Below, piece by piece: positions 27,632 to 60,089 of a stretch of DNA of 64,000 nt. The notes under the pieces were generated by a model. That model ran no database searches, was not told the DNA's origin, and saw nothing but the letters and a program-made list of their open reading frames with translations. The position numbers and the translations under genes were made by a program. Numbering within the stretch: position 1 is the stretch's first letter; each line of letters opens with the position of its first letter. The stretch is from Mobula hypostoma (taxonomy: Eukaryota): contig NC_086103.1 of the NCBI RefSeq assembly GCF_963921235.1, positions 72,850,001 to 72,914,000 of the forward strand. The letters are read 5' to 3'.

Positions 27632-27683
27632 ATGGCTGTTACTGACGTTGTGGCTCATTTGTTAATGATGTTACTTCTGTTAG
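27632..27683 (+). CDS. TIM-like copy 1 exon 1: signal peptide MAVTDVVAHLLMMLLLL(G)
   Basis: Kozak gcgATGG, hydrophobic leader, phase-1 donor G|GTACGT at 27684; conserved in all three units. Confidence 0.88.
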
Positions 27684-28362
27684 GTACGTTTCTGAAAGCA
27701 GGAATCGAATTAGCTTGTTCAGTCTTGTTGCTTTAACCTCCTGGATGCAATAATTGAGATGGAGACTGTGTGAGTGAGGGACCCGGGAGGGTACAGCCGA
27801 GATATTAATGGGGCGGGGGTGGTGGTGGAGGTGAACTGACGGGGTGAGTGAACTTGGAGGACTGATCATTGCTGATCCGAATGGACCATGAAACAAGACC
27901 AAAGCTCGGAATATCCCCTGATCATTGCGGTGAAGGTTTGGGAGCACAGTAGGTATGTGAGTGGGAAAATGAATCCCAGATCCAAATTGGCAAGAGAGGA
28001 GAATGATTTCAATACTCGAGATCACAATCGGATCTTCGTACCTTCCCTGCATGTTTCTGTATCAGTGACTGAACAGTTCTCTGAAATGTTACCGCTGGAC
28101 TATCGGTTGTGTCAAAACTACAGAAATGCAATGCGATCACCACATCGTATTCCATGTCAGCTGAGGGGTGGGCGTTTCGGAATGTCGGGAATACCTAATA
28201 GTATCCACATCCCTTTGAATTTTCGTAATATTCCTCAGATGCCGCCCGGCAGGTAAAATGGATCACATTGCCGTTGCTCGGGCAGGTTTCTAAACTGTGG
28301 GCACACCCGTCTGATCATCTCATTCAGCGCCATCTGTAACTTTCTTTCCTGGATTGTTTCAG

Positions 28363-28710
28363 GTCGCGTCGCCTTCGTCTCTGGGACAAACGTGCGAGGA
28401 GTCACGGGACAGTCGATCACACTGCCATGCCGCTATTCTGTCGGAAAATATGTCAAAAGTGCGATGTGCTGGGGTCGGGGACAGTGTGGTGTTATGAACT
28501 GTGGAGATGAACTGATCAGAACAAATGGAGACAGAGTAACTTCTGTAACATCCCAGAGATACAGACTTGGTGGTAGAATTGCGGCAGGAAATGTGTCGCT
28601 CACTATAAATGATCTACAGAGAGAAGATAGCGGCTGGTATTGCTGCCGTGTGGAGATTCCGGGACCGTTTAATAATCTGAAAACGAATTTGAATCTCCGG
28701 GTTTTGGACG
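28363..28710 (+). CDS. TIM-like (HAVCR1/TIMD4 family) copy 1 exon 2: IgV domain
   Basis: tttcctggattgtttcAG acceptor, G|GTAAG donor, 348 nt phase 1-1, open. Six-Cys TIM pattern LPC..CWGRGQC....C..VSLTI..DSGWYCCRVEIPGPFNN. Confidence 0.95.
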
Positions 28711-28765
28711 GTAAGCAGCTCAATATTACATGATTCTGTGTCAGAAATGGCGGCATAGTGGTGTA

Positions 28766-29019
28766 GCCGCTATTCTGTCGGAACATATGTAAAAAGTGAG
28801 ATGTGCTGGGGTTTGGGGACAGTGTCCTTTTAGCGCCTGTGGCCACGGGTTGATTAGAACAAATGGAGACGAGTAACTTCTGTAGAATTGCGGCAGGAGA
28901 TGTGTCGCTCACTATAAATGATCTACAGAGAGAAGATAGCGGCTGGTATTGCTGCCGTGTGCGGATTCCGGGACAACATAATGATTTGAAAACGAATTTA
29001 AATCTCCTGGTTTTGGACG
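28766..29019 (+). pseudogene. Truncated, frameshifted fourth TIM IgV exon copy (no acceptor, donor retained)
   Basis: Starts mid-exon (gccgctattctgtcgga); +1 frameshift near WG, -1 near NGD, ~28-bp deletion; encodes CPFSACGHG and RIPGQHND; ends GACG|GTAAG. Confidence 0.9.
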
Positions 29020-29054
29020 GTAAGCAGCTCAATATTACATGATTCTGTGTCAGA

Positions 29055-29330
29055 AATGGCGGCTCAGCGGTGTAGCTGCTAGGTAATTGCCCCACATCTC
29101 CTGAGATTCAGGTTCGATCCCGCGCTCCTGTGCGGAAATCATACGTCCTTCCTTGCTTCCTCCGGGTGCTCTGAGATCGCAAGAACAGGTTAGTAGATTA
29201 ATAGGTCAGCATAAACTGTCGCTAGTGTAAATTAACGGCAGGACAATGGCGGGAGCCAAGTTTCTGGGGAGATATGGGGGATGTATCTGATGGGAATCTT
29301 GAGCAGTTGATATGGTCTCGATGGGCTGAA
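29055..29330 (+). mobile_element. Degenerate tRNA-derived SINE (V-SINE/HE1-like) in intron 2; further copies at about 29555-29850 and 39045-39340
   Basis: A-box-like GGCTCAGCGG (29061-70), B-box GGTTCGATCC (29111-20), followed by cctccgggtgctc body. Confidence 0.6.
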
Positions 29331-30269
29331 CGGCCCTCTTTTGCCCCTGAGAACATAAGAAATACCACAATGAATACTGATTTATTTTTCACTGTTGTAT
29401 ATCCACTAGAATGGATAATGTGCAGGATGACAACGGCAGGACAGTACAATGTGATATGGACAAAGAGTGCATTGTCTGAGATTCTGTGGAGAGAAATGTT
29501 TTGTGTGTTGCTCAGATATACAACACAAAACAATGTTACATGATTCTGTGTCAGAAATGGCGGCATAGTGGTGTAGCTGCTAGTACATTTTCCACAGATC
29601 TCCTGTGATTCTGGTTCCATCGGGAGCTCCTCTGTTTAGTGTGCGGAAATCATATGTCCTTGCTTGCTTCCTCCGGTGCTCTGAGATCGCAAGAACAGGT
29701 TGGTAGATTAATCGGTCAATGTAATCAGCCGCTAGTGTAAATTAACGGCAGGACAATGGCGTGAGCCAAGTTTCTAGGGAGATATGAGGGATGTATCCGA
29801 TGGGAATCTTGGGCAGATGATATGATCTCGATGGGCTGAACTGCCCTCTTCTGCCCCTGAGAACATAAGAAATACCACAATGAATACTGATATATTGTTC
29901 ACTCTGTTGTATATCCAATAGAATGGATAATGTGCAGGATGACAATGGCAGGACAGTACAATGTGATGTGGACTAAGAGTGCATTGTCTGAGATTCTTTT
30001 GTGTGTTGCATCAGATATACAACACATAACAATGGGCTTCTGGTGTCAATAACTGTGCTAATGCCGCTGTCATAGGAGCATAACAAACCGAAGCAGCAGT
30101 TGTCCATTGGACATTCCTGGCTGTTCCAACATTCATTCAGAATGTGGTTGATCTTGTTTCTACCTCAGCGCTATTTTCCACCACTGTCCTGTATCCCTTG
30201 ACTCCATGTCCAGACATCTATCAATCTGTGTTTTGAACAAATATGAAGAATGTGCATTTACAGCCTAAA

Positions 30270-30870
30270 GGATCATGACCACAGAAAGATCTTCTTATGC
30301 TGAGCTTTACAAGATACTAATCAGGCTGCACTGAGAGTATTGACTACAGTTTTGGGCCCCTTATCTTAGAAAGGATGTGTTGTCATTGGAGAGATTCCAG
30401 AGCAGGTTCACAGGGATGATTATGAGATTCAAGGGTTTAACATGTGAGGAACATTTGGCAGCTTTGGGCCTGTACTCGCTGGAATTTAGAAAAATGTGGG
30501 AAGAAATCATTGAAAGCTACAGAATGTTGAAAGGACTAGATAAGGTGGTTGTGGAGCGGATGTCTCCTCTGATGGGAGCACAGCCTCAAGATTCAGGGTG
30601 ACCCTTTACAACAGAGGTATGGAGGAATTTTTTTTAGCCAGAGAGTAGAAGATCTGTGTAATGCTGTGCCACGGACTTCAGTGGAGGCCAAGTCCGCGCC
30701 TATATTTAAGGTGGAAGTTGATCACTTCCTGATCAGTCAGGGCATCACAGGATAGGGCGAGTAGACAGGTGTATGGGGTTAAGTGGGATCCTTGATCAGC
30801 CGTGATAGAATGGTGAAGCAGACTCAATGGTCTGAATGGCCTCATTCTGCTCCCATGTCTGATGGTTTTA
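30270..30870 (+). mobile_element. Old CR1 3' fragment shared with unit 2 (39760-40385)
   Basis: ORF 30377..30601 ERFQSRFTGMI..GLYSLEFRKM. Confidence 0.8.
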
Positions 30871-36055: not shown

Positions 36056-37909
36056 TAAACATTAGAAGCTTTAAACATAGGAGTCACAGAGTCATACTGT
36101 AGTTGTACAGAGTCTTGGCAAGACTGCACTGGGCAGGTAGTGGAGAGTTCCAGTTTCTTAACAATGAAAGGACATACCTGCCAAAGAGAGAGAACAATGA
36201 ATAACTGGAGTCACAGAAAGCAATTCACATCACCCTTCCCCCACGCTTCAATGTAGTGAGTGCTGGATATATTTGGAGAGTTCAAGATCAAGTCATTGTT
36301 TGAACACATCGGTCGTCCATTTGGTCAGAATATATCTGAACAGCCCTTTGCATCACCTGGTGTTCAGACATTTACTCTCATCTGGAAATTGCTCACTTAT
36401 CATTGTTTCTCATAAATTGGAGGCACAGTAATCTGAGACAGAATGAATATATATCTGCAGCCTGGATCTGGGGCACTGAGCTTCTTTTTCTTGGTGTCAC
36501 TTTGATCCCTCTGTAAATCATCATCCTAATACCTCCATCCTTTAGTGTTATGTTCAATTCTTTCTGCCAGATTTTTTTTTACCTTTAATGATTGAATATA
36601 AATAATTATCAGTCCCTACATCACATTTAATTACAGTTGTTCTGCATGAAAAATAACTGAATACCCTGGAAAGGGCAAATCAGTCTCGTTCTGTTGTTTC
36701 TGTTCATCTCTTTCTGGCCATTATCATGGTTCATTTTCCCTGCCAACCCTTTCTCACACTCCTTGCTTCCGATCACTTCCCCATCTCCCACTGCCTCCCC
36801 AACTCCTTGATATTTCTTCTTCATATCAGTCCCTCCCAATTACTGGGGTCTGATCTTCATCTCACCTTTACCTGTGAGCTGCCCGGGAAGTGCACCAGAC
36901 ATCTGATGTAGGCAGGTCTGACCACAGCCCCAGTATCACTCCCAGTGTCAGTGCTTATTACAGCATGATTCAATAATTTGCAGTTTGCAGTTCAGAGACT
37001 CTTGAGTCACCATTAAGCCTCTTCACAGTCGGACAGAGAGTGAAAGTACCTTCACTCCTGACCAACAAATAGTCATAGTCATAGTCATACTTCACTGATC
37101 CCGAGGGAAATTGATTTTCGTTACAGTTGCCCCAACCAAGAATAGCGTATAAATATAGCAATATAAAACCATAAATAATTAAATAGTAATATGTAAATTA
37201 TGCCAGGAAATAAGTCCAGGACCAGCCTATTGGCTCAGGGTGTCTGACCCTCCAAGGCAGGAGTTGTAGAGTTTGATGGCCACAGGCAGGAATGACTTCC
37301 TATGACGCTCTGTGTTGTATCTCAGTGGAATGAAATGACCTTGACTCCAGTCTTGAACTGGGTTGACAGACCAAATTTAGACTACCAGTGCAGAACAGGC
37401 TGGTGTTTCCACAGAAAATGGTGGAATCACCTTATCTGGGTCTCTTGATCTCTCACTCACTCCGTACTTCACCCTCGGTTCCGTTCACGTACGAAGCATT
37501 GAAACGTGACACGAAATGACAGGACTCAACCAGACCAGCGACCCAACAGTTCAAACAGCCAGTTGGATACTTGGCAATTTGCCCGTTCGTGTTACTGATG
37601 GACATTTCAGACACGAATTTCTGTTGATGTCGCGTCACATCTGTGATCGGAAGAACTGATTTATCTCAAAACCGGGAACTGAAAGCAATGGTGAAGGAAA
37701 TCCGTGTACGTTTAAACTTTGATGGAAACACCGGGGAGGAGCCGAGTGTTTGATAACACTTGCCCCATTTCTCCGAGGTGTCGGTGAACAACACCCGTGC
37801 TCCTGTGGAAGGAACTCTTGTCCACGACAAGCTGGAAGCAACAGTTTAACTCGCAGCCGCAGCCTCTGCTGCAGCGACACGGAGAGCGGCCGCCACAGTG
37901 TCCGGCGCG

Positions 37910-37961
37910 ATGGCTGTTACTGGCGTTGTGGCTCATTTGTTAATAATGTTACTTTTGTTCG
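37910..37961 (+). CDS. TIM-like copy 2 exon 1: signal peptide MAVTGVVAHLLIMLLLF(G)
   Basis: Kozak gcgATGG, donor G|GTACGT at 37962. Confidence 0.9.
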
Positions 37962-38665
37962 GTACGTTTCTGAAAGCAGGAATTGAATTATTTTGTTCAA
38001 TCTTGTTGTTTTAACTTCTTGGACGCAGTAGTTGAGACGGAGACTGTGTTTGAGTGAGGGACCCGGGAGGGTACAGCCGAGACCCCGAGTGATGCCCGGC
38101 GCTGCCGGTTTTTGATCAATGGCCGGGGAGGGGGGGTGAACTGACGGGCTGAGTGAACTTGGAGGACTGATCATTGCTGATCTGAATGGACCATGAAACA
38201 AGACCAAAACTCGGAATATCCCCGATCATTGCGGTGAAGGTTTGGGAGCACAGTGGGTATGTGAGTGGGAAAATGAATCACAAATCCAAAATGGCAAGAG
38301 AGGAGAATGACTTCAATCCGCGAAATCACAATCGGATCTTCGTCCCTCCCTGCTTATTTCTGTGTTAGTGACAGAACAGCTCTCTGAAATGATACCGCAG
38401 GACCATCGGTTTTGTCAAAACTACAGAAATGCTGGTCGATCACCACATCCTACTCCGGGTCAGCTGAGGGATTGGTGTTTCAGAATGTCGGGAATACCTA
38501 ATAGTATCCACATCCCTTTGAATTTTCGTAATATTCCTCAGATGCCGCCCGGCAGGTAAAATGGATCACATTGCCGTTGCTCGGGCAGGTTTCTAAACTG
38601 TGGGCACACCCGTCTGGTCATCTCATTCAGCGCCATCTGTAACTTTCTTTCCTGGATTGTTTCAG

Positions 38666-39013
38666 GTCGAGTCGCCTTCGTCTCTGGGACAAACGTGCGA
38701 GGAGTCACGGGACAGTCGATCACACTGCCGTGCCGCTATTCTGTCGGAAAATATGTAAAAAGTGCGATGTGCTGGGGTCGGGGACAGTGTGATGTTACGA
38801 ACTGTGGAGATGAACTGATCAGAACAAATGGAGACAGAGTAACTTCTGTAACATCCCAGAGATACAGTCTTGGTGGTAGGATTGCGGCAGGAGATGTGTC
38901 GCTCACTATAAATGATCTACAGAGAGAAGATAGCGGCTGGTATTGCTGCCGTGTGGAGATTCCGGGACCGTTTAATGATCTGAAAACGAATTTGAGTCTC
39001 CGGGTTTTGGACG
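38666..39013 (+). CDS. TIM-like copy 2 exon 2: IgV domain
   Basis: Canonical AG/GTAAG, 348 nt, six Cys, FG-loop EIPGPFND. Confidence 0.95.
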
Positions 39014-40964
39014 GTAAGCAGCTCAATGTTACATGAATCTGTCAGAAATGGCGGCATAGTGGTGTAACTGCTGGTACATTTTCCACAGATCTCCTGTGAT
39101 TCTGGTTCCATCGGGAGCTCCTCTGTTTAGTGTGCGGAAATCATATGTCCTTGCTTGCTTCCTCCGGTGCTCTGAGATCGCAAGAACAGGTTAGTAGATT
39201 AATCGGTCAACGTAATCAGCCGCTAGTGTAAATTAACGGCAGGACAATGGCGTGAGCCAAGTTTCTAGGGAGATATGAGGGATGTATCCGATGGGAATCT
39301 TGGGCAGATGATATGATCTCGATGGGCTGAACTGCCCTCTTCTGCCCCTGAGAACATAAGAAATACCACAATGAATACTGATATATTGTTCACTCTGTTG
39401 TATATCCAATAGAATGGATAATGTGCAGAATGACAATGGCAGGACAGTACAATGTGATGTGGACTAAGAGTGCATTGTCTGAGATTCTTTTGTGTGTTGC
39501 ATCAGATATACAACACATAACAATGGGCTTCTGGTGTCAATAACTGTGCTAATGCCGCTGTCATAGGAGCATAACAAACCGAAGCAGCAGTTGTCCATTG
39601 GACATTCCTGGCTGTTCCAACATTCATTCAGAATGTGGTTGATCTTGTTTCTACCTCAGCGCTATTTTCCACCACTGTCCTGTATCCCTTGACTCCATGT
39701 CCAGACATCTATCAATCTGTGTTTTGAACAAATATGAAGAATGTGCATTTACAGCCTAAAGGATCATGACCACAGAAAGATCTTCTTATGCTGAGCTTTA
39801 CAAGATACTAATCAGGCTGCACTGAGAGTATTGACTACAGTTTTGGGCCCCTTATCTCAGAAAGGATGTGTTGTCATTGGAGAGATTCCAGAGAAGGTTC
39901 ATGGGGATGATTACGGGATTCAAGGAGTTAACATGTGAGGTGCGTTTGGCAGCTTTGGGCCTGTACTCACTGGAATTTAGAAAGATGTGGGAAGATATAA
40001 TTGAAACCTACAGAATGTTGAAAGGACGAGGTAAGGTGGATGTGGAGCCGATGTTTCTTATGGTGGGAGTATCCAGAACTGTAGGGCACAGCCTCATGAA
40101 TGAGGAGTGACCCTTTAGAACAGAGGTAAGCAGGAATTTTTTTTAGCCAGAGAGCAGTAAATCTGTGGAATACTCTGCCACAGACTGCAGTGGAGGCCAT
40201 GTCTGTGTGTATATTTAAGGTGGAAGTTGATTGTTTCCAGATTGATCAGGGCATCAAAGGATACGGTGAGCAGGCAGGTGTATGGGGTTGAGCAGTATCT
40301 GGGATCAGCCATGATAGAATGGTGAAGCAGACTCAATGGGCTGATTGGCCTCATTCTGCTCCTATGTCTTATAGTCTTATGGCATGTACAGTTCTGATGA
40401 AAGGTATTGGCCCAAGCCATCAACTGTACTGATTTCTATAGATGCTGCCTGGCCTGCGGAGTACCTCCAGCATTTTGTGTTCACTCCTTCGATTTCCAGC
40501 ATCAGCAGATTTTCTCGTTTCTCATGTAAGTTCTAGGTTCCTCAGGCAGGGAAAACAGCCTCCTTACATTTTTTTCTGCCAGGTTCTTGAAGGATTTTTT
40601 CTCTTTTGTTGAAGCTGAAGAAAGTAAAATCCCAGTCTACTCAATATCTTCTCATTTTGAAAACCTACCAATCCTGAATCATTATTGCACTCTGCCTGTA
40701 GCAAGTACATCCTTTCTTAGGTTAGAGGTCAAAACTGTCCAATATACTCTTGGGTGCTTTTGCCAAGTCATTTTACAAGTACAGCAAGACTTGCTCATTG
40801 CTGTATTCAGATTCTCTTGTAAATTGTAATCGACTATTTGCACCTACATCAGACCTTGGTCTCTATAAACTTTAACATTACGTAATCACTCTCCATTTAA
40901 TAACTAGTTACTTTTCTATTAATTGCACTAGAATGGATAAGCTTTAAATTTTTTCACATTGTAG

Positions 40965-43005
40965 GAACATGGAAACATAAGAAAACCTACAGCACAATAC
41001 AGACCCTTCGGCCTACAAAGCTGTGCTGAACAGGTCCTTACCTTAGATATTACCTAGGGTTACCCATAGCCCTCTATTTTTCTAAATTCCATGTACCTAT
41101 CCAGGTCTCTTGAAAGACCCTATCGGATCTGCCTCCACCATTGTCGCCGGCAGCACATTCCACGCACTCGCCACTCTCTACATAAAAAACTTACCCCTGA
41201 CATCTCCTCTGTACCTACTTCCAAGCACCTTAAAACTATGCCCTCTCATGCTAGCCAATTCAGCCCTGGGAGAAAGCCTCTGACTATCCACACAATCAAT
41301 GCCTCTCATCATCTTATACACGCCTATCAGGTCACCTCTCATCCTTCCTTGCTCCAAGAAGAAAAGGACAAGTTCCATCAATCTATTCTCATAAGGCATG
41401 CTCCCCAATCCAGACAACATCCTTATAAATCTCCTCTGCACCTTTTCTATGCTTTCCACATCCTTCCTGTAGTGAAGCAACCAGAACTGAGCACAGTACT
41501 CCAAGTGCGGTCTGACCAGGGTCCCATATAGCTGCAACATTACCTCTCGGCTCCTAAATTCAATTCCACGATTGATGAAGGCCAATGTACCGTATGCCTT
41601 CTTAACCACAGAGGCAATCTGCACTGCAGATTTGAGTGTCCTATGGACTCGCACCCAAGATCCCGCTGATCTCCACACTTACCATTAATACTGCATTCTG
41701 CCATCATATTTGACTGACTAAAATGAACCACTTCTCACTTATCTGGGTTGAACTCCATTTGACACTTCTCAGCCCAGTTTTGCTTCCTATCAATGTCCCA
41801 CTGTAAACTCTGGCAGCCCTCCACAATATCCACAACACCCTGACCTTTGTGTCATCAGCAAATTTACTAACTCAACCCTCCGCTTCCTCATCCGGGTCAT
41901 TATAAAAATCACAAAGAGTAGGTGTCCCAGAACAGACCCCTGAGGGACACCACTGGTCACTGACCTCCATGCAGAATAGCACCCATCTACAACCACTCTT
42001 TGCCTTCTGTGGGAAAGCCAGTTCCGGATCCACAAAGCAATGTCCCCTTGGATCCCATACCTCCTTACTTTCTCAATAAGCCTGGCATGGGGTACCTTAT
42101 CAAATGCCTTGCTGAAATCCATATAAGCTACATCTACTGCTCTATCTTCATCAACGTGTTTAGTCATATCCTCAAAAAATTCAGTTGGGCTTGTAAGGCA
42201 CGACCTGCCTTTCACAAATCCATGCTGACTATTCCTAATCATATTATGCCTCTCCAAATGTTCATAAATCCTGCCTCTCAGGATCTTCTTCATCAACTTA
42301 TCAACCACTGGTCTATAATTTCCTGGGCTATCCCTACTCTGTTTCTTGAATAAAGGAACAACATTTGCAACCCTCCAATCCTCTGGAACCTCTCCTGTCC
42401 TCATTGATGATGCAAAGATCATCCCCAGAGGGTCAGCACTCTCCTCCCTCGACTCCCACAGTAGCCTGGGGTACATCTCATCTGGTCCCGGTGAATTATC
42501 CAACTTGATGCTTTCCAAAAGCTCCAGCACATCCTTAATATCTACATGCTCAAGCTTTTCAGTCCATTTTAAGTCATCCCTACAATCACCAAGATCCTTT
42601 TCCATAGTGAATACTGAAGCAAAGTATTTAGTAAGTACCTCTGCTATCTCCTCTGGTTCCATACACACTTTTCCACTGCCACACTTGATTGGTCCTATCC
42701 TCTCACTTCTTATCCTTCCTGCTAGCCTTATAATCTTCTGGACTCTATCATTACCTAGTATTTTGAACCTTTCATAAGCTTTTCTTTCCCTTCTTGACTA
42801 GATTTACAACAGCCTTTGTACACCATGGTTCCTGTACTCTACCATCCTTTCCCTGTCTCATTGGAATGTACCTATGCAGAATTCCATGAAAATATCCCCT
42901 GAACATTTACCACATTTTTTTCGTACATTTCCCTGAGAACACCTGTTACCAATTTATGCTTCCAAGTTCCTGCCTGGTAGCCTCATATTTCCCCTTATTA
43001 CAATT
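40965..43005 (-). mobile_element. CR1 RT fragment, unit-2 specific
   Basis: ORFs 41178..41678 and 41790..42668 with CR1 RT motifs; interrupts the ancient CR1 with an ATTGTA-like duplication. Confidence 0.9.
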
Positions 43006-43892
43006 ATATTGTATTCCTTTCGACATTTTCTTGCCCTCCCATGGAGCTTGTTTATATAAAATACATAACTTTTTCTCTCATATATTTCATTGCATCTCAA
43101 TCCTGAACGATGATGCCTTATTTTGAGATTTTGAGATGATGATCCCTACAGGCAAAGCATTTCTTACACCTTCCTTTTGTAGCCCTCTCAGAATTGTATG
43201 CATTTCAATCAGCTCCCCTCCTATTCTTCTAAGCTCTGCTGTGCACTCAACATCTGTTTCCCTGGAATCAATGTATGAATATTTATTTCTTCTGAACAAG
43301 TTTTTTGTTTATCTGCCTATTGGCTTACGTAGCCTTCAGTGACCATGAACACAGACACCCAGATCCTTTGGATGTCCAATCACTCACCATATAACAAAAA
43401 TCTGTTTTTCTAATATTCCTCCTGAAGTGGATCATGTCATATTTCACTACATTATATCCCATTCATTATGTCCTTATCTATTTAGCCAGACCTCCCTTTT
43501 CCACTGATTTCTCCTTACATTCTCTGTAAATCTCATGGTGTTAAATCTTGGAAATGTTGCCCTTGAGCTAAGTCTTTGATATATGTTACACAGAGAAGAG
43601 GGTCCAACCCTGTGACTATGAAGCCCATCCACCTGCAGATTCACAACCCAAGCTTATTCCATCTGTTTTCTCTGTTAACCAATGCAGATTAGAGAATTGA
43701 GCCCAAAACAAAATGTCCTAATCACAGCTAACAGTGGCACTTTAAAGATCCTCCAATGGTCTAAATACTTAATATCCACCTGTTGTCCCTAATCTTTTCT
43801 ACAAGTTATATAAGCTTGAAGCAAGTGAATAAAATTGCATGACAAGCATTGAAAAACGTAAAAAATAAATTTAATCTTTCTTCTGTACACAG

Positions 43893-45990: not shown

Positions 45991-47707
45991 GAACTGTTTT
46001 AGAAACATAGAAAAAATAGGTGCAGGAGTAGGCCATTCGGCCCTTTGAGCCTGCACCGCCATTTATTATGATCATGGCTGATCCTCCAACTCAGAACCCT
46101 GCACCAGCCTTCCCTCCATACCCCCTGATCCCCGTAGCCACAAGGGCCATATCTAACTCCCTCTTAAATATAGCCAATGAACTGGCCTCAACCGTTTCCT
46201 GTGGCAGAGAATTCCACAGATTCACCACTCTCTGTGTGAAGAAGTTTTTCCTAATCTCGGTCCTAAAAGGCTTCCCCTCTATCCTCAAACTGTGACCCCT
46301 CGTTCTGGACTTCCCCAACATCGGGAACAATCTTCCTGCATCTAGCCTGTCCAATCCCTTTAGGATCTTATACGTTTCAATCAGATCCCCCCTCAATCTT
46401 CTAAATTCCAACGAGTACAAGCCCAATTCATCCAGTCTTTCTTCATATGAAAGTCCCGCCATCCCAGGAATCAATCTGCTGAACCTTCTTTGTACTCCCT
46501 GTATGGCAAAGATGTCTTTCCTCAGATTAGGGGACCAAAACTGCACACAATACTCCAGGTGTGGTCTCACCAAGGCCTTGTACAAATGCAGTAGTACGTT
46601 CCTGCTCCTGTACTCGAATCCTCTCACTATAAATGCCAGCATACCATTCGCCTTTTTCACCGCCTGCTGTACCTGCATGCCCACTTTCAATGACTGCTGT
46701 ATAATGACACCCAGGTCTCGTTGCACCTCCCCTTTTCCTAATCGGCCACCATTCAGATAATAATCTGTTTTCCTATTTTTGCCACCAAAGTGGATAACTT
46801 CACATTTATCCACATTAAATTGCATCTGCCATGAAGTTGCCCACTCACCCAACCTATCCAAGTCACCCTGCATCCTCTTAGCATCCTCCTCACAGCTAAC
46901 ACTGCCACCCAGCTTCGTGTCATCCGCAAACTTGGAAATGCTGCATTTAATTCCCTCATCCAAGTCATTAATATATATTGTAAACAACTGGGGTCCCAGC
47001 ACTGAGCCTTGCGGTACCCCACTAGTCACCGCCTGCCATTCTGAAAAGGTCCCGTTTATTCCCACTCTTTGCTTCCTGTCTGCTAACCAATTCTCCACCC
47101 ACACCAATACCTTACCCCCAATACCGTGTGCTTTAAGTTTGCACACTAATCTCCTGTGTGGGACCTTGTCAAAAGCCTTTTGAAAATCCAAATATACCAC
47201 ATCCACTGGTTCTCCCCTATCCACTCTACTAGTTACATCCTCAAAAAATTCTATGAGATTCGTCAGACATGATTTTCCTTTAACAAATCCATGCTGACTT
47301 TGTCCGATCATTTCACCACTTTCTAAATGTGCTGTTATCACATCCTTGATAACTGACTCCAGCAGTTTCCCCACCACCGACGTTAGGCTAACCGGTCTAT
47401 AATTCCCCGGTCTCTCTCTCCCTCCTTTTTTAAAAAGTGGAGTTACATTAGCCACCCTCCAATCCTCAGGAACTAGTCCAGAATCTAACGAGTTTTGAAA
47501 AATTATCACTAATGCATCCACTATTTCTTGGGCTACTTCCTTAAGCACTCTAGGATGCAGGCCATCTGGCCCTGGGGATTTATCTGCCTTCAATCCCTTC
47601 AATTTACCTAACACCACTTCCCTACTAACATGTATTTCGCTCAGTTCCTCCATCTCACTGGACCCTCTGTCCCCTACTATTTCTGGAAGATTATTTATGT
47701 CCTCCTT
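45991..47707 (-). mobile_element. Young 5'-truncated CR1 with an uninterrupted 520-codon RT ORF
   Basis: ORF 46091..47653 open with FADD; 3' tail at 45991; near-identical to 1-1300. Confidence 0.95.
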
Positions 47708-47770
47708 ATTTCTGGAAGATCATTTATGTCCTCCTTATTTCTGGAAGATTATTTATGTCCTCCTTATTTC
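47679..47770. repeat. Three tandem 29-bp units at the CR1 5' junction
   Basis: ATTTCTGGAAGATTATTTATGTCCTCCTT starting at 47679, 47708, 47737; single copy in the sister CR1 at about 1266-1294. Confidence 0.95.
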
Positions 47771-50700
47771 CAAAACCGCGAATTAAACGACATTGAAGGA
47801 AATCCGTGCACGAGGAATGCAGTAGTTATAGGGGATTCCATAGTCAGGGGAATGGACAGGAGATTCTGTGAGCCTGATAGAGATACCCACATGGTGTGTT
47901 GCCTTCCAGGTGCCAGGGTACGGGATGTCTCGGATTGGGACTAGAATATTCTGAAGGGGGAGGGTGAGCAGCCTGTTGTCTTGGTACATGTTGGTACCAG
48001 TGACATAGATAGGACAAAGGAGGAGGTCCTGAAGAGAGATTTCTGGGAGTTAGGAAGGAAGCTGAGAAGCAAGACCTCCAGGGTAGTAATCTCGGGGTTG
48101 CTACCTGTGCCACATGCTAGCAAGGGCAAGAATAGGAGGATCAGGCAAATGAATGCATGGCTGAGAGACTGGTGCAGGGGGCAGGGCTTCAGATTCTTGG
48201 ATAATTGGGATCTCTTCTGGGGGAAGTATGACCTGTTCAAAAATGACAGGTTACACCTGAACTGGAAGGGGACCAATATCCTGGCAGGAAAGTTTAATAG
48301 AGCTGTTAGGGAGGGTTTAAACTAATTTGGCAGGGGGATGGGAACCGGAATGACAGAGCGGAGGAAGGGAAAAACAGAAATAAATCTAAGATAGTGAGCA
48401 GTAAAGATGTCAGGAAAGACAGGCAGGTGATGGGGCAAATGTGTAGCCATTGGGATGAGTTGCAGTGCAATAAAGTTGCAGTGAAATCAAAGCAAAAAGT
48501 ACCAAATACTGGTGTTAAGGTGTTATACTTAAATGCACGCAGCATAAGGAATAAGGTGGATGATCTTGTCGTACAGCTACAGATTGGCAGGTATGATATT
48601 GTGGCCATCACTGAGACGTGGCTAAAGGATGCATGTCTCTGGGAGCTGAACGTCCAAGGATACACGGTGTATCAGAAGGATAGGAAGGTAGGCAGAGGGG
48701 GAGGCGTGGCTTTATTGGTAAGAAATGATATTAAATCATTAGAAAGAGGTGATATAGGATCGGAAGGTGCAGAATCTTTATGGGTTGAGCTAAGAAATCG
48801 CAGGGGTAAAAGGATCCTGATGGCAGTTATTTATAGGCCTCCAAACAGCTGCAGTGATGTAGACTACAAATTACAACAGGAAATAGAAAAGGCTTGTCAG
48901 AAGGGTAGTGTTATGATAATTGCAGGGGATTTTAACATGCGAGTGGATTGGGAAAATCAGGTCCGCACTGGATCTCAAGAGAGAGAATTTGTAGAATGTT
49001 TGCGAGATGGCTTTTTAGAACAGCTTGTTGTTGAGCCCACTAGGAGATCGGCTGTACTGGATTGGGTATTGTGTAATGAACCGGAGGTGATTGGAGAGAT
49101 TGAGGTGAAGGAACCATTAGGAGACAGTGATCATAACATGTTTGAATTCACTGTGAAATTTGAAAAAGAGAAGCCGAAATCTGTTGTGTCGGTATTTCAG
49201 TGGAGTAAAGGAAATTACAGTGGCATGAGAGAGGAACTGGCCAAAGTTGACTGGAAAGGGACACTGGTGGGAAAGACGGCAGAGCAGCAGTGGCTGGAGT
49301 TTATGCGAGAAGTGAGGAAGGTGCAAGACAAGTATATTCCAAAAATGAAGAAATTTTCAAATGGAAAAAGGATGCAACCGTGGTTGACAAGAGAAGTCAA
49401 AGCCAAAGTTAAAGCAAAGGAGAGGGCATACAAGGAAGCAAAAATTAGTGGGAAGACAGAGGATTGTGAAGTTTTTAAAACCTTACAAAAGGAAACTAAG
49501 AAGGTTATTAAGAGGGGAAAGATTAACTATGAAAGGAAGCTAGCAAATAATATCAAAGAGGATACTAAAAGCTTTTTCAAGAATATAAAGAGTAAAAGAC
49601 AGGTGAGAGTAGATATAGGACCGATAGAAAATGATGCTGGAGAAATTGTAATGGGAGATAAGGAGATGGCGGAGGAACTGAACGAGTATTTTGCATCAGT
49701 CTTCACTGAGGAAGACATCAGCAGTATACCGGACACTCAAGGGTGGCAGGGAAGAGACGTGTGTGCAGTCACAATTATGACAGAGAAAGTACTCAGGAAG
49801 CTGAATAGTCTAAAGGTAGATAAATCTCCCGGACCAGATGGAATGCACCCTCATGTTCTGAAGGAAGTAGCTGTGGAGATTGCAGAGGCATCAGCAATGA
49901 TCTTTCAAAAGTCTTTTCTTTTAAAATCTTTTTATTAATTATTATTGAAAATCAACAACAGAAAAAAATACATCAAAATAATCAAGATAACATATCCATA
50001 TGTAAAGTAAAAGTTAAAACTATCAACCGGGCCGAACAATATATCAATAATAATCAATAAACAAAGTATTAAAGCTTTTTTTATATGGAAAAAAGGAAAG
50101 AAAGAAAAAAAAGAACCCTTACTAACTAAAACAGAGAAAACCCCTAATAACTAAAAAAAAGAAAAGAAAACCATTTGGAGCACAAACCCGGAGCTATGAG
50201 CCAAACAAGTTTCTATACAAAAGGACATCAAACCACCAGCCAAACCCATAAACCAAGCATCAGAGAAGTACCATCTGAATTAACTCAAGTCAAATGGTAA
50301 TAACGGCAAAAGAACCTCACCTTTTCTCGAAGTCAAATTTAGGATCAAAAGTTCAACTTCTAATTTTTTCCAAACTAAGACATAACATCACCTGAGAGAA
50401 CCATTGTATCAAAGTGGGAGCAGAGGCATCTTTCCATTTTAATAAAATAGCCCTTCTAGCCAATAATGTGACAAATGCAATTACGTATTGGTTTGATATA
50501 GAAATACCGTGAATATGTTGAGGAATTATACCAAACAAAACTGTCAATTTATTAGGTTGTAAATTGATTTTTAAAGCTTTAGAGATTGTAGAAAAAATAG
50601 ATTTCCAAATTTGTTTCAATACAGAACACGACCAAAACATACGTGTCAATGTAGCTATGTCAGTTTTGCATCTATCACACTGACTATTTACATTAGGAAA

Positions 50701-53700
50701 TATTTTAGACAATCTCTCCTTTGTCAAATAATAATGATGTACAATTTTAAGTTGAATTAAAGAATGACTGGCACAAATCGAAGAAGAGTTAACCAGCTTC
50801 AAAATTTGCAACCAATCCTCTGTTATCAGGGTCATATTAAGCTCTCTTTCCCAATCTTGCTTAATGTTAAGTAAAGGATAGTTATCCTGTTGTAATAGTA
50901 AATTATAAATTTTCCCAATAAAACCTTTCAGTAAAGGGTTCATTTTTAAAATAATGTCTAACAGGTCAGAGCCTTGTATATATGGAAAATTACTTAAATA
51001 TTCTTGTAAGAAATGTCTGACCTGAAGATATTGCAATAAATGTGAGTATGAGAGGGTGTATTTAGTTACTAATTTCTCAAAGGACATCAATCGACCTTCT
51101 TGAAACAAGTCGATAAAGGAAAAAATTCCTTTATTCCTCCAAAGAGAAAAGGTAGGATCACTAAGTGAAGGTTTAAATAAATAGTTTCGATAAATTAAAC
51201 TGAAAAGGTAAGATTTTTTAAGATTTAAAAACTTACAAAACTGGTACCAAATTCGTAATGATTGATTAATCATAGGAATTATATTTAAATAGAAATTTTG
51301 GTTAATTGTACAGGTAAAGGAGCTCCTAATAACGAAGTTAAATGAAATTGTTTCACCATTTTCAATTCCAAATCAACCCAAGATGGTCGTTCCTTTTTAT
51401 CGGTCCAATATAACCAAGAACACGCATAACGTATATTAACGGCCCAATAGTACATTCTTAAATTAGGCAAAGTAAGACCTCCATCCTTTTTTAATTTTTG
51501 TAAATGACATTTTCCAATTCTTGGTCTTTTATTATTCCAAACAAAAGATCAAATAATAAAATCAACCTAATCAAAAAACTTCTTAGTTAGAAAAATAGGA
51601 ATGTTTTGAAATACATATAAAAATTTTGGTAAAATCATCATTTTAACTGCATGAATTCGACTTACGAACGAAAGTGTAAGTGGATTCCATCTAGAAAAAA
51701 TTTGCTTCATAAAATCCACCCAGGGAACTAAATTAGCTCTACAAAGGTCTCCGTAATTTTTAGTGATGATAATACCTAAATATTTAAAAGAATCTGTAAC
51801 CTTTAGTGGAATATTACCATATATAGATGCGGAATCATTTAAAGGAAATAATTCACTTTTATGCAGGTTTAATTTATATCCTGAAAACAATCCAAATTCA
51901 TTTAATAATTTCAATAAGCTAGGAATAGATTCTTCGGGATTCGAAATATAAACCAAAAAATCATCCGCATAAAGGGAGATCTTATGAATAGTCCCATTTA
52001 TAGAAATTCCTTGAATATTTTTAGCTTCACGAAGTGCAATAGCCAAGGGATCCAACATCAAGTTAAATAACAGAGGACTTAATGGATATCTTTGTCTCGT
52101 ACCCCGGGAAAGCTGGAAAAAGGGGATCTACAGTTATTAGAGATAACAGTGGCAATAGGGCTTTTATATATCAATCTAATCCATTTATTAAAATTAGTAC
52201 CAAAGCTAAATTTCTCTAAAACTTTGAATAGATATTTCCATTCAACTTGTATCAAATGCCTTTTCAGCATCTAGAGAAACAACACATTGGGGGGTCTTAG
52301 AGAGGGATGAGTATATAATAGTTAACAATCTCCGAGTATTAGAAAAAGAATAACGGCCTTTTACAAAACCAGTTTGATCCTGAGAAATAATTTTTGCCAG
52401 TATATTCTCCATCCGATTAGCCATTATTTTTGAAAGAATTTTGGCATCCACATTTAATAACGAAATAGGTCTATATGAAGCACAATCAGTAGGGTATTTA
52501 TCTTCCTTAAGAATTAAAGAAATAGAAGCTTTATAAAATGTGGAAGGTAACTCTCCTAACAGAAAAGGATCTTTAAGCATTTCCAACATATAAGGAGTAA
52601 GCAAATGTTCAAATTTTTTAATAAAATCCTGCAGTAAAACCATCCAATCCAGGAGCTTTACCAGATTGCATTGAAAGAATAGCTTTCTGAATTTCTCTTT
52701 CAGTGAAAGGAGCATCAAGAATTTGCTGATCTTCAATAGATATTCTAGGAAAATCAATCTTTTGTAAAAAGGCATACATATTAGAAGGGTCAGCTGGAAA
52801 CAGATTTATAGAGTTCACTGTAATAGTCTTGAAAAAAATTATTAATATCTTCATAATTACTAGCTAAACTAACATCTCCCTTATGAAATTTTTAAAATTT
52901 GTCTTTTAGCTCTAACTGCTTTAAGTTGAGATGCTAATAGCTTGTTACTTTTATCTCCAAACATATAAAATTGACTTTTTAATTTAAGCAAATTTCTTTC
53001 AATAGGATAAGTTAATAGTAAATTATATTGTGATTGAAGTTCAACCCTTTGTTTAAATAAATCAACATTAGGAGAAACTGCATAAGTGTTATCCAGATCT
53101 GGAAATTGTATGTAACTCTATTTTTGTCTATTTCTTAAGTTTAGCCAAATAAGATATTATCTGACCTCGCAAATATGCTTTGAGTGTATCCCATACAATC
53201 AATTTCGAAACATCTCCCGTATTATTAAAAAGAAAGAAATCTTTTATCTGAATCTCTATAAATTTAACAAAGTCCGAACTTTGTAATAAATTTTCTGGAA
53301 AGCGCCAAGGCAAGTTTACATTACTAACATCATTTAACTCAAAAGTTAAGCCTAAAGGCGCATGGTCCAAGACTGCAATAGCATCATATTCACATTTCTG
53401 GACTTTGGACAAAAATCGGAAACCAGCTATAAAATAATCAATTCTCGAATATTTATTATGAACATGTGAATAAAAAGAATAATCTCTGTGATTAGGATGT
53501 AAATTTCTCCAGATTTCTATCAAACCATAATCAGTTAAAAAGGAATTAATAAGTGTTGCCGAACGACTCAAAAGCTGCTGATTGGTTGAACTTTTGTCAA
53601 TCAAAGGGTTTAAAGAACAGTTGAAGTCACCTCCCTTCAGTAGCATATATTCATTTAAGTCTGGTAATAAACCAAGTACATTTTTTTAAAAAAGAAGGAT

Positions 53701-53976: not shown

Positions 53977-55713
53977 AACACACATCAAAGTTACTGGTGA
54001 ACGCAGCAGGCCAAGCAGCACCTCTAGGAAGAGGTACAGTCGACGTTTCAGGCCGAGACTCTTCGTCAGGACTAACTGAAGGAAGAGTGAGTAAGAGATG
54101 TGAAAGTTGGAGGGGGAGGGGGAGATCCAAAATGATAGGAGAAGACAGGAGGGGGAGGGATAGAGCCAAGAGTTGGACAGGTGATAGGCAAAAGGGGATA
54201 CGAGAGGATCATGGGACAGGAGGTCCGGAAAGAAAGACAAGGGGGGGGGACCCAGAGGATGGGCAAGAGGTATATTCAGAGGGACAGAGGGAGAGAAAGG
54301 AGAGTGAGAGAAAGAATGTGTGCATAAAAATGAGTAACAGATGGGGTACGAGGGGGAGGTGAGGCCTTAGCGGAAGTTAGAGAAGTCGATGTTCATGCCA
54401 TCAGGTTGGAGGCTACCCAGACGGGTTGTTCCTCCAACCTGAGTGTGGCTTCATCTTTACAGTAGAGGAGGCCGTGGATGGACATGTCAGAATGGGAATG
54501 GGATGTGGAATTAAAATGTGTGGCCACTGGGAGATCCTGCTTTCTCTGGCGGACAGAGCGTAGATGTTCAGCAAAGCGGTCTCCCAGTCTGCGTCGGGTC
54601 TCGCCAATATATAAAAGGCCACATCGGGAGCACCGGACGCAGTATATCACCCCAGTCGACTCACAGGTGAAGTGTTGCCTCACCTGGAAGGACTGTTTGG
54701 GGCCCTGAATGGTGGTAAGGGAGGAAGTGTAAGGGCATGTGTAGCACTTGTTCTGCTTACACGGATAAGTGCCAGGAGGGAGATCAGTGGGGAGGGATGG
54801 GGGGGACGAATGGACAAGGGAGTTGTGTAGGGAGTAATCCCTGCGGAATGCAGGGGGGGGAGGGAAAGATGTGCTTAGTGGTGGGATCCCATTGGAGGTG
54901 GCGGAAGTTACGGAGAATAATATGTTGGACCTGGAGGCTGGTGGGGTGGTAGGTGAGGACCAGGGGAACCCTATTCCTAGTGGGGTGGCGGGAGGATGGA
55001 GTGAGAGCAGATGTACGTGAAATGGGGGAGATGCGTTTAAAAGCAGAGTTGATAGTGGAGGAAGGGAAGCCCCTTTCTTTAAAAAAGGAAGACATCTCCC
55101 TCGTCCTAGAATGAAAAACCTCATCCTGAGAGCAGATGCAGCGGAGACGGAGGAATTGCGAGAAGGGGATGGCGTTTTTGCAAGAGACAAGGTGAGAAGA
55201 GGAATAGTCCAGATAGCTGTGAGAGTCAGTAGGCTTATAGTAGACATCAGTGGATAAGGTGTCTCCAGAGACAGAGACAGAAAGATCTAGAAAGGGGAGG
55301 GAGGTGTCGGAAATGGACCAGGTAAACTTGAGGGCAGGGTGAAAGTTGGAGGCAAAGTTAATAAAGTTAACGAGTTCTGCATGCGTGCAGGAAGCAGCGC
55401 CAATGCAGTCATCGATGTAGCGAAGGAAAAGTGGGGGACAGATACCAGAATAGGCACGGAACATAGATTGTTCCACAAACCCAACAAAAAGGCAGGCATA
55501 GCTAGGACCCATACGGGTGCCCATAGCTACACCTTTAGTCTGGAGGAAGTGGGAGGAGCTAAAGGAGAAATTATTAAGAGTAAGGACTAATTCCGCTAGA
55601 CGGAGCAGGTGGTAGAGGGGAACTGATTAGGTCTGAAATCCAAAAAGAAGCGTAGAGCTTTAAGACCTTCCTGATGGGGGATGGAAGTATATAAGGACTG
55701 GACATCCATGGTG
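53977..55713 (-). mobile_element. Penelope-like element (RT + GIY-YIG), 5'-truncated, inserted in L1 ORF2
   Basis: ORF 54784..55524 (MGTRMGPSYACLF, FLRYIDD); ORF 54393..55247 (VIYCVRC..LYIGETRRRL..RFAEH); 9-bp TSD ATTTTAAAT (53968-76 / 55714-22). Confidence 0.93.
54037..54074 (-). ncRNA. Minimal hammerhead ribozyme motif (PLE)
   Basis: Minus strand TAGTC-CTGACGA-AGAGTCTCGGCCT-GAAAC-GTC/GACTG; one mismatch in helix II relative to the 4461 copy. Confidence 0.7.
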
Positions 55714-59223: not shown

Positions 59224-59275
59224 ATGGCTGTTACTAGTGTTGTGGCTCATTTAACAATAATGTTTCTTCTGATGG
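59224..59275 (+). CDS. TIM-like copy 3 exon 1: signal peptide MAVTSVVAHLTIMFLLM(G)
   Basis: Kozak gcgATGG, donor G|GTACGT at 59276. Confidence 0.88.
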
Positions 59276-59741
59276 GTACGTTTCTGAAAGCAGGAATCGA
59301 ATTCACTTGTTTAATCTTGTTGTTACAACTTCTTGGAATGCAGTAATTGAGGTGGAGCCAGTGTGTGAGTGAGGGAGCCTGGACCCTGAGTGGTGCCGGG
59401 TCTGCCGGGTTTGAAGATTGAGGGGTGATCTTGGATGACTGACTAGTGCTGATCTGAATGGACCTGATCACTGTGTATTGCACAATCATTGCGGTGAAGG
59501 TTTGGTAGCACAGTGGGTATGTGAGTGGGAAAATGAACGAGAGGCTGGATCTGTGATCAGAGGCGTCCGTTCGATTCCCACTGGGCAGTTTGGGGATTTT
59601 CCGTAATATTCCCCCGATGCCTCGCAGCAGGTAAAATGGATCAGTTTCTCAATGCTGGGACGGGTTTTCAAACTGTGGACACACCCTCTTTCATCATCCC
59701 ATTCAGCGCCATCTGTAACTTTCTTTCCTGCATTGTTTCAG

Positions 59742-60089
59742 GTCGAGTCGCCTTCGTCTCTGAGACAAACGTGCGAGGAGTCACGGGACAGTCGATCACA
59801 CTGCCATGCCACTATTCTGTCGGAAAATATGTAAAAAGTGCGATGTGCTGGGGTCGAGGACAGTGCCCTTTAAGCGGCTGCGGACACGTGTTGATCGGAA
59901 CAAATGGAGACAGAGTAACTTCTGTAACATCCCAGAGATACAGTCTTGGTGGTAGGATTGCGTCAGGAGATGTGTCGCTCACTATAAATGATCTACAGAG
60001 AGAAGATAGCGGCTGGTATTGCTGCCGTGTGGAGATTCTGGGACTGTTTAATGATCTGAAAACGAATTTGAATCTCCGGGCTTTGGACG
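59742..60089 (+). CDS. TIM-like copy 3 exon 2: IgV domain
   Basis: Canonical AG/GTAAG, 348 nt, six Cys, CPLSGCGHV loop, FG-loop EILGLFND. Confidence 0.95.

Follow-up and report, generated by a model that had tools for sequence, protein, structure and literature searches.

Homogenised framework and putatively old CC' loop segment in the TIM-type IgV exons of the ray Mobula hypostoma

How can copies of one exon be almost the same over most of their length and yet differ from each other in nearly half the nucleotides of 12 codons? The question is raised by a 64-kb stretch of DNA from the ray Mobula hypostoma (the window), to whose four copies of an IgV exon, here called c1, c2, c3, and c4, all our nucleotide comparisons refer. 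An initial annotation of the window had assigned the exons to the TIM family, had placed their diversity in the CC' and FG loops, and had proposed that the frameworks are homogenised while divergent binding loops are retained by selection as a germline receptor repertoire. The answer that we prefer, with a probability of about 0.65, is a mosaic: gene conversion would homogenise the IgV exon, an old CC' segment would escape from it, and the resulting loop types would likely tune ligand preference.

Three of the copies are intact IgV exons of 348 nt in phase 1-1, which, like c4 and the leader exons, loop segments, low-divergence tracts, and SINE-like exon described below, are located on the forward strand. 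Exon c3 (59742..60089) is flanked by the acceptor AG and the donor GTAAGC, and its product is a V-set Ig domain of 115 residues, six of which are Cys. Together with its leader exon (59224..59275; MAVTSVVAHLTIMFLLM plus a G; donor GTACGT) it is identical to residues 1–133 of P0161, a "TIM-4-like" protein of M. hypostoma, which after the IgV domain has an annotated S/T/P-rich stalk and a transmembrane (TM) segment. Since the P0161 gene is 24.1 kb long (GCA_963921235.1), the mucin, TM, and tail exons of c3 lie past the window end. The other two intact copies, c2 (38666..39013; leader exon 37910..37961) and c1 (28363..28710; leader exon 27632..27683), retain ATG, leader, every splice site, six Cys, and the open frame, and in each of the three cases the leader exon, with ATG and GTACGT donor, lies 0.47–0.7 kb upstream of the V exon. 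In a tblastn comparison of the window with those regions of four Mobula proteins that follow the IgV domain (mucin, TM, and tail), no credible exon of this kind was found downstream of c1 or c2; the single match for the tail parts (46207–46353) was weak and stop-riddled (E 1–4.5). Nor was a protein model for c1 or c2 found among the matches of length-limited protein searches, in which the c2 IgV domain as query retrieved only proteins of 139–201 amino acids from skate, shark, and gar.

The fourth copy, c4 (28766..29019), is a frameshifted and truncated pseudo-exon, which lacks everything before exon position 67 and in which one nucleotide has been inserted and two stretches, of 1 and 28 nt, have been deleted. 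Its equivalent of the divergent 12 codons reads CPFSACGHGLIR and its FG loop RIPGQHND, with R97 as in some stingray genes. The truncated V exon and approximately 0.5 kb of intron are inserted 56 bp past c1 (28711–29535); at the junction the intron is joined to exon position 67 at a short common GC(C/T)GCT motif, and the first intron bases are present in three copies after the insertion.

The surroundings of the V units are rich in repeats. Sequences that resemble tRNA-derived SINEs (GGTTCGATYCC box) are found just upstream of the c3 V exon (59500–59600) and in introns of c1, c2 (39043–39193), and c4; a 150-nt element after the c2 exon is missing from c3. The spacers are filled by retroelement open reading frames (156–1358, 41790–42668, 46091–47653, 48394–49938, 50353–51273, and 54393–55247), among them LINE-type reverse transcriptase and endonuclease, with one weak sub-threshold match to GIY-YIG; the blocks 1–1296 and 46412–47708 are 96% identical. 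A tandem repeat (33440–34873), when translated, is 76% identical to the odd C-terminus (LELRNLGALGLK...) of P0015, a protein model from M. birostris, and this C-terminus is probably a read-through of the repeat rather than a real tail. An assembly artefact as the source of the copies was ruled out, because their introns are 10–23% apart, c3 corresponds to an independent protein record, and another sequencing run reads the divergent codons of c2 exactly.

The exons encode IgV domains of the TIM (HAVCR/TIMD4) family, whose genes have multiplied in myliobatiform rays. In a sequence search of the PDB (phmmer), mTIM-1 was matched with 3e-33 and TIM-4 with 1.5e-32 (range for TIM-1/TIM-4 3e-33 to 9e-32); the identity to mammalian TIM IgV domains is 46–53%, Pfam finds a V-set domain (1e-17 to 1e-18), and the 19 best Foldseek matches in the PDB of the AlphaFold model (pLDDT 84.8) are all TIM-1, -2, -3, or -4 with TM-scores of 0.76–0.88. 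The family assignment of the initial annotation is thus borne out. The six Cys of c1, c2, and c3 (C22, C35, C41, C46, C93, and C94) align with those of the TIM proteins and by homology would form the canonical B-F disulfide and two non-canonical ones that tie down the CC' loop (PMC6269442). The FG loop motif I-P-G-x-F-N-D aligns with I114, G116, N119, and D120 of hTIM-3, which hold Ca2+ (PMC6269442). By this alignment the rays have a candidate Ca2+/phosphatidylserine site, in which F102 is retained and residues 103–104 are N-D in c2 and c3 and N-N in c1. The FG loop of c1 (28653–28676) hence ends in F-N-N, not F-N-D, with an Asn instead of the Asp aligned to the calcium-coordinating Asp120 of hTIM-3; N-N is likewise found in Hemitrygon P0159, another domain with a loop of type A as defined below. 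In the AlphaFold model, residues 33–38 are strand C, 48–53 strand C', and 98–104 the FG loop. The divergent patch therefore comprises the CC' loop, where it had been placed before, and in addition the start of strand C'.

The patch, codons 41–52, is found at 59864..59899 in c3 (CPLSGCGHVLIG; type B2, the canonical TIM form 'CP.S.C'), at 38788..38823 in c2 (CDVTNCGDELIR; type A), and at 28485..28520 in c1 (CGVMNCGDELIR; type A, with the same GVMN as in proteins of Hypanus sabinus and M. birostris). The variants listed earlier, GVMN/DVTN/PLSG/PFSA in the patch and EIPGPFNN/EIPGPFND/EILGLFND/RIPGQHND in FG, are all present, and the counts given for c2 versus c3 were exactly reproduced: of the 25 nucleotide differences, 16 fall in the 36 nt of the patch and 9 in the other 312. 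As scan statistic the largest number of differences within any 36-nt window was used; none of 200,000 permutations reached the observed 16, the permutation maximum being 12–13 (c2/c3 and c1/c3). Two nonsynonymous FG changes had been singled out among the nine differences outside the patch. Both exist, but they belong to seven nonsynonymous changes as compared with two synonymous ones (small counts), and both are CCG>CTG transitions at CpG sites. They gave rise to the derived L99 and L101 in the FG loop of c3 (EILGLFND, 60032..60055), by alignment the metal/phosphatidylserine-site motif, where P0156, the M. birostris counterpart of c3, still has P-G-P.

Between loop types the patch has a pN of 0.36 and a pS of 0.70–0.75, as compared with 0.02–0.03 and 0.03–0.06, respectively, in the rest of the exon. 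The patch dN/dS is thus below 1, and the excess of dN over dS by which diversifying selection on the loops would be recognised is not observed; between the two type-A copies, c1 and c2, the patch shows two nonsynonymous and no synonymous changes (small counts). Of the codons that specify the same residue, three of five differ silently inside the patch and 2 of 96 outside (p=6e-4), those inside being the codons of both Cys and of one Leu. Finally, the patch divergence of 50% exceeds even that of the introns (13–23%, p=7e-6). Because its silent sites are saturated, because conserved Cys and Leu codons differ silently, and because it is more divergent than the introns, the patch is much older in ancestry than its surroundings, and judging from these substitution patterns it is not the product of recent adaptive point mutation.

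Does the concentration of differences hold when more domains are aligned? For this, 15 domains were added to those of the window: P0157 and P0160 from M. hypostoma, P0155 (two IgV), P0015, P0156, and P0158 from M. birostris, P0002 (two IgV), P0016, P0162, and P0151 from Hypanus sabinus, and P0159, P0163, and P0164 from Hemitrygon akajei. The resulting 18 distinct ray and stingray domains are all 115 amino acids long and align without gaps. Residues 40–52, which make up 11% of the length, account for 31% of the total entropy (p=3e-5) and are the top-ranked contiguous window; the variation is therefore not evenly spread, and its concentration in CC' is upheld. This is not so for the FG loop, which as a region (97–104) is not significantly enriched in these domains (p=0.16) and which, with the two CpG transitions in c3, does not stand as the second hot spot it had been thought to be. 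Only its tip, position 101, is strongly variable (W/L/P), being P or L and never W in Mobula, and W in stingray copies. With more paralogues aligned, the BC loop (27–33) also emerged as enriched in variability among the 18 domains (p=0.013), an observation that the initial annotation did not contain. Across 22 sequences, 29 columns are invariant.

The near identity of the frameworks extends beyond the coding sequence. Between c2 and c3 a tract of low divergence (38624..39042) reaches from 42 nt upstream to 29 nt downstream of the exon, with 11 differences in the 386 nt outside the patch (2.8%), whereas the colinear introns are 23% apart on one side (−146..−43) and 12.7% on the other (+181..+615; Fisher 3.5e-10, and p=0.003 with synonymous sites only). 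The silent framework sites, too, differ by 2.8% as compared with 12.7–23% in these introns. Between c1 and c2 the tract of near identity is 1.4 kb long (28215..30330, broken in c1 by the c4 insertion at 28772–29530); its introns differ at 7 of 946 nt (0.7%) and its flanks by 10–18%. The c1 and c2 exons differ more than the introns beside them (10/348 versus 7/946, p=0.005), and this excess includes silent sites. Pseudo-exon c4, segment by segment, is 93–100% identical to c1 and c2 in the framework and 22–44% different in the patch and 23–27% in the FG loop; since it is frameshifted, purifying selection on c4 itself cannot explain the identity of its framework. Similarity tracts with such discrete borders are, to judge from the alignments, gene conversion tracts, and as silent framework sites are far less divergent than colinear introns, conversion is needed to explain the homogenisation. 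The claim of framework homogenisation is thereby strengthened and narrowed to a mechanism, for which silent sites, introns, and tracts speak together; the selected retention of the loops that had been coupled to it stays an interpretation, the patch dN/dS being below 1.

The loops and the frameworks follow different histories in other rays. Three loop types can be distinguished: A (G/D-V-M/T-N), B1 (PSRG), and B2 (P-L/F-S-G). For example, GVMN is found in c1, M. birostris, and Hypanus, PSRG in both Mobula species, Hypanus, and Hemitrygon, and P-L/F-S-G in c3, c4, and Hypanus, so that each type is present in Mobula and in stingrays. Mobula belongs to the Myliobatidae and Hypanus to the Dasyatidae, which are different families of the Myliobatiformes. 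It should be noted that the trans-lineage piece is just 4–5 residues long, the second half of the patch (GHVLIG versus GDELIR) being specific to Mobula. In a framework tree, from which columns 40–52 were removed, all ten Mobula domains fall into one clade (support 98/92), and loop type requires seven changes on it; a type-A clade is rejected (AU test, p=0.009). Since Pro follows the third Cys in 106 of 140 TIM-type domains among the search matches, and since the G/D-V-x-N form is confined to ray proteins among the same 140, type B looks ancestral and type A derived.

The proteins also differ in their tails. One type of tail is short and has an Arg in the TM helix (...CWTARVSVF...; P0161, P0157, and P0156), and the other is TIM-1-like and ends in ...AEENIYQISE (P0160, P0155, P0162, and P0163). 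By its sequence the pair suggests adaptor-coupled and tyrosine-signalling TIM receptors in rays. Each tail type is 72–82% identical between the lineages, from which it follows that the tails are orthologous. The frameworks, by contrast, have an identity of 0.92 when domains of one lineage with different tail types are compared, and of 0.88 when orthologues with the same tail are compared between lineages. Concerted evolution that is specific for the exon and exempts one segment is thus well supported, as far as can be read from this cross-species comparison of 115-residue proteins with about four lineage-diagnostic framework sites.

Whether c1 and c2 are used is a question of its own. Reads from RNA-like runs of the same organism, the RNA nature of which is guessed, were mapped to the c2 region (37800–43700). 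The c2 V exon including the patch was read exactly in them at a depth of 2–4; the c2 leader and introns had no coverage in this region. In one contig (run X25, 189 nt, depth 3.5) the c2 V acceptor at 38666 is joined to a SINE-like segment (29120..29188) of the intron after c4, which is used there as an exon with the donor CAG|GTTAGT. The joint spans 9.5 kb and leaves out the c2 leader, which indicates that at least some transcripts pass from the c1 unit into the c2 V exon. If the SINE-like exon started at the AG equivalent to c2 39129–39130, it would be an in-frame phase 1-1 linker of 60 nt. Very high depth was seen at 39770–40557 and 40952–43118, mostly in LINE sequence, probably from transcripts of repeat elements; within these blocks a reverse-transcriptase reading frame is evident only at 41790–42668. 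As all V exons are in phase 1-1, splicing of one to the next, or of each to common downstream exons, would be possible. Models of TIM proteins with two IgV domains exist in M. birostris and Hypanus, models with several also in frogs and birds, and a transcript contig with four is known from a frog, so the V exons of the ray copies, too, may be used serially or alternatively. A germline receptor repertoire, as proposed earlier, is therefore uncertain: intact leader and V exons speak for it, and against it that c1 and c2 are without downstream exons and that the RNA-like contigs are of low depth only.

Can all this be explained more simply? If the copies had been duplicated recently and positive selection had then acted on point mutations in the loops, the frameworks would be alike because of youth and conversion would not be needed. 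The clustering of differences in ligand-contact loops fits this, as do the purely nonsynonymous changes in the c1/c2 patch and the location of three of the six nonsynonymous c1/c2 differences in CC' or FG loops. Copies with colinear introns 10–23% apart are, however, not young, and neither the saturated synonymous divergence of the patch, with its silent differences in conserved Cys and Leu codons, nor the occurrence of GVMN and PSRG in stingrays is expected of young copies, which makes this explanation very improbable. Even less credible, indeed hardly worth maintaining, is purifying selection alone, with a framework constrained down to its silent sites and a CC' loop that drifts. The 29 invariant columns do attest to an extremely conserved framework, but a loop that is merely unconstrained should not diverge by 50% where introns diverge by 13–23%, the silent framework sites and approximately 70 nt of adjoining intron are 5-fold below intron divergence, the frameshifted c4 keeps a near-identical framework, and framework residues go with the lineage in paralogues whose tails are orthologous.

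Of a different kind is the proposal that the direction was the reverse, whole exons having been duplicated or homogenised recently and the CC' segment having been imported later by short-tract conversion, for which no selection is needed. Sharp patch borders with distinct ancestry, a type-B2 pseudo-exon only 56 bp from c1, and the excess of exon over intron differences between c1 and c2, which fits micro-conversions from other paralogues, are all compatible with import. The sole candidate donor within the window, c4, nevertheless differs from the c3 patch at 7/32 to 8/36 nt, and the presence of all three types in both ray families favours long retention over repeated import. The two directions are not mutually exclusive; import as the main event we regard as unlikely. 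A possibility to be taken more seriously, if still a doubtful one, is that c1 and c2 are non-functional leader-plus-V relics, overwritten by conversion from functional TIM genes, and have no meaning for a repertoire. The tblastn and protein searches, which yielded neither a mucin, TM, or cytoplasmic exon past c1 or c2 within the window nor a model of their own among the length-limited matches, fit such relics, and so do the uncovered leader and introns of c2 and a V exon at a depth of 2–4 that was once found joined to a cryptic exon derived from a SINE. On the other hand, both copies still have their ATG, leader, and splice sites, all six Cys, and an uninterrupted frame; their phase 1-1 V exons could be spliced serially or to shared exons, as the multi-IgV models of M. 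birostris, Hypanus, and frog illustrate, and the same loop types are carried by functional paralogues located elsewhere in the genome (P0157, P0160, and P0161).

In the mosaic that we prefer, ectopic gene conversion among paralogues would repeatedly homogenise the exon together with a few tens of bases of adjoining intron, even where the genes carry different tails that are each conserved among orthologues, and long-term purifying selection would hold the framework near-invariant. A 12-codon segment, made up of the CC' loop (between Cys41 and Cys46) and the residues with which strand C' begins, would escape from homogenisation and persist as the types A, B1, and B2, which would be older than the split between mobulids and dasyatids. 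High patch divergence alone could block conversion mechanically, in which case selection would not be required; we infer, however, that it is selection rather than such a barrier to heteroduplex formation that keeps the loop types.

In mammalian TIMs the cleft between the CC' and FG loops holds Ca2+ and the head group of a phospholipid. Since the CC' loop is one wall of this cleft, the loop types most likely differ in ligand preference, so that the paralogues would offer different lipid head-group preferences on an identical scaffold. Such a difference in specificity is suggested by analogy: in human TIMs the CC' conformation sets the cleft volume (PMC6269442), and in mouse TIM1 the substitutions S36L and S37F, between the same two Cys, add binding of phosphatidylethanolamine (PMC11575270). 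The rays vary at residues 42–45, the same positions as this mouse stretch, and a different head-group or ligand preference would be the most likely consequence of variation at exactly those residues. A more far-reaching version, which we put forward as tentative and on balance do not expect to hold, is that CC' is an ancient three-state specificity cassette, kept by selection since before mobulids and dasyatids separated, despite continual homogenisation of the exon, in a TIM system with paired tails, in which c1–c3 serve as alternative or serial V exons on shared mucin and TM exons. If this were true, loop types could be combined on the shared mucin/TM exons of one long transcription unit.

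How do the ray genes compare with known systems? With mammalian TIM-1/HAVCR1, TIM-3/HAVCR2, and TIM-4/TIMD4 (PDB 2or8, 3bib, 5dzo, and 6dhb) they have in common the six-Cys V-set fold, the CC' loop pinned on the GFC sheet, in annotated products such as P0161 the mucin stalk and the TM helix, and, in the second tail type, the TIM-1-like ...NIY... tail. Unlike in mammals, the family has expanded in this lineage to at least five IgV exons in M. hypostoma, three of them in the window; these evolve in concert, and their CC' loops fall into three discrete types. One of the tails is short and bears an Arg in the TM helix, the FG tip in Mobula is P or L and not Trp, and c1 has Asn at the equivalent of hTIM-3 Asp120.

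The kind of process is already known from paired Ig-like receptors. Homogenisation of the ligand-binding exon by gene conversion is reported for CEACAM1-related receptors (PMC2110893) and for CD300A/CD300C (PMC12447643). The systems are alike in that the IgV exon is similar between genes with different tails and that this similarity follows the species rather than the orthology of the tails; the ray genes differ in that a segment of the binding loop is exempt and kept as trans-lineage types. Adaptor pairing and opposite signalling are putative in the rays, where they are read from tail sequences. Siglec-5/14 are further paired receptors with a conversion-homogenised binding exon.

Fishes are also known to have germline-diversified innate IgV families, namely NITR, DICP, and the MDIR of skates, with tandem V arrays, CDR-like loop variation, and activating and inhibitory tails, in which the genes number in the tens to hundreds and the V domains vary broadly. 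The ray TIM genes resemble these in their tandem V-type domains, loop-focused variation, and mixed tails; they differ in being few, in having a scaffold that hardly varies, and in confining the variation essentially to one segment of three types.

Via the CC'/FG cleft, TIM receptors recognise the phosphatidylserine of dying cells and of enveloped viruses. The open-access literature that we searched yielded no paper on the TIM genes of either cartilaginous or teleost fish, and within it neither the occurrence of this pattern in ray TIM genes nor the sharing of loop types across lineages seems to have been described. The findings thus extend the biology of the TIM family to cartilaginous fish. 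They would also provide a clean case of one exon divided between gene conversion and selection, and, with one scaffold, three old loop versions, and two kinds of tail, the ray family may be viewed as a natural experiment in the diversification of lipid-sensing receptors.
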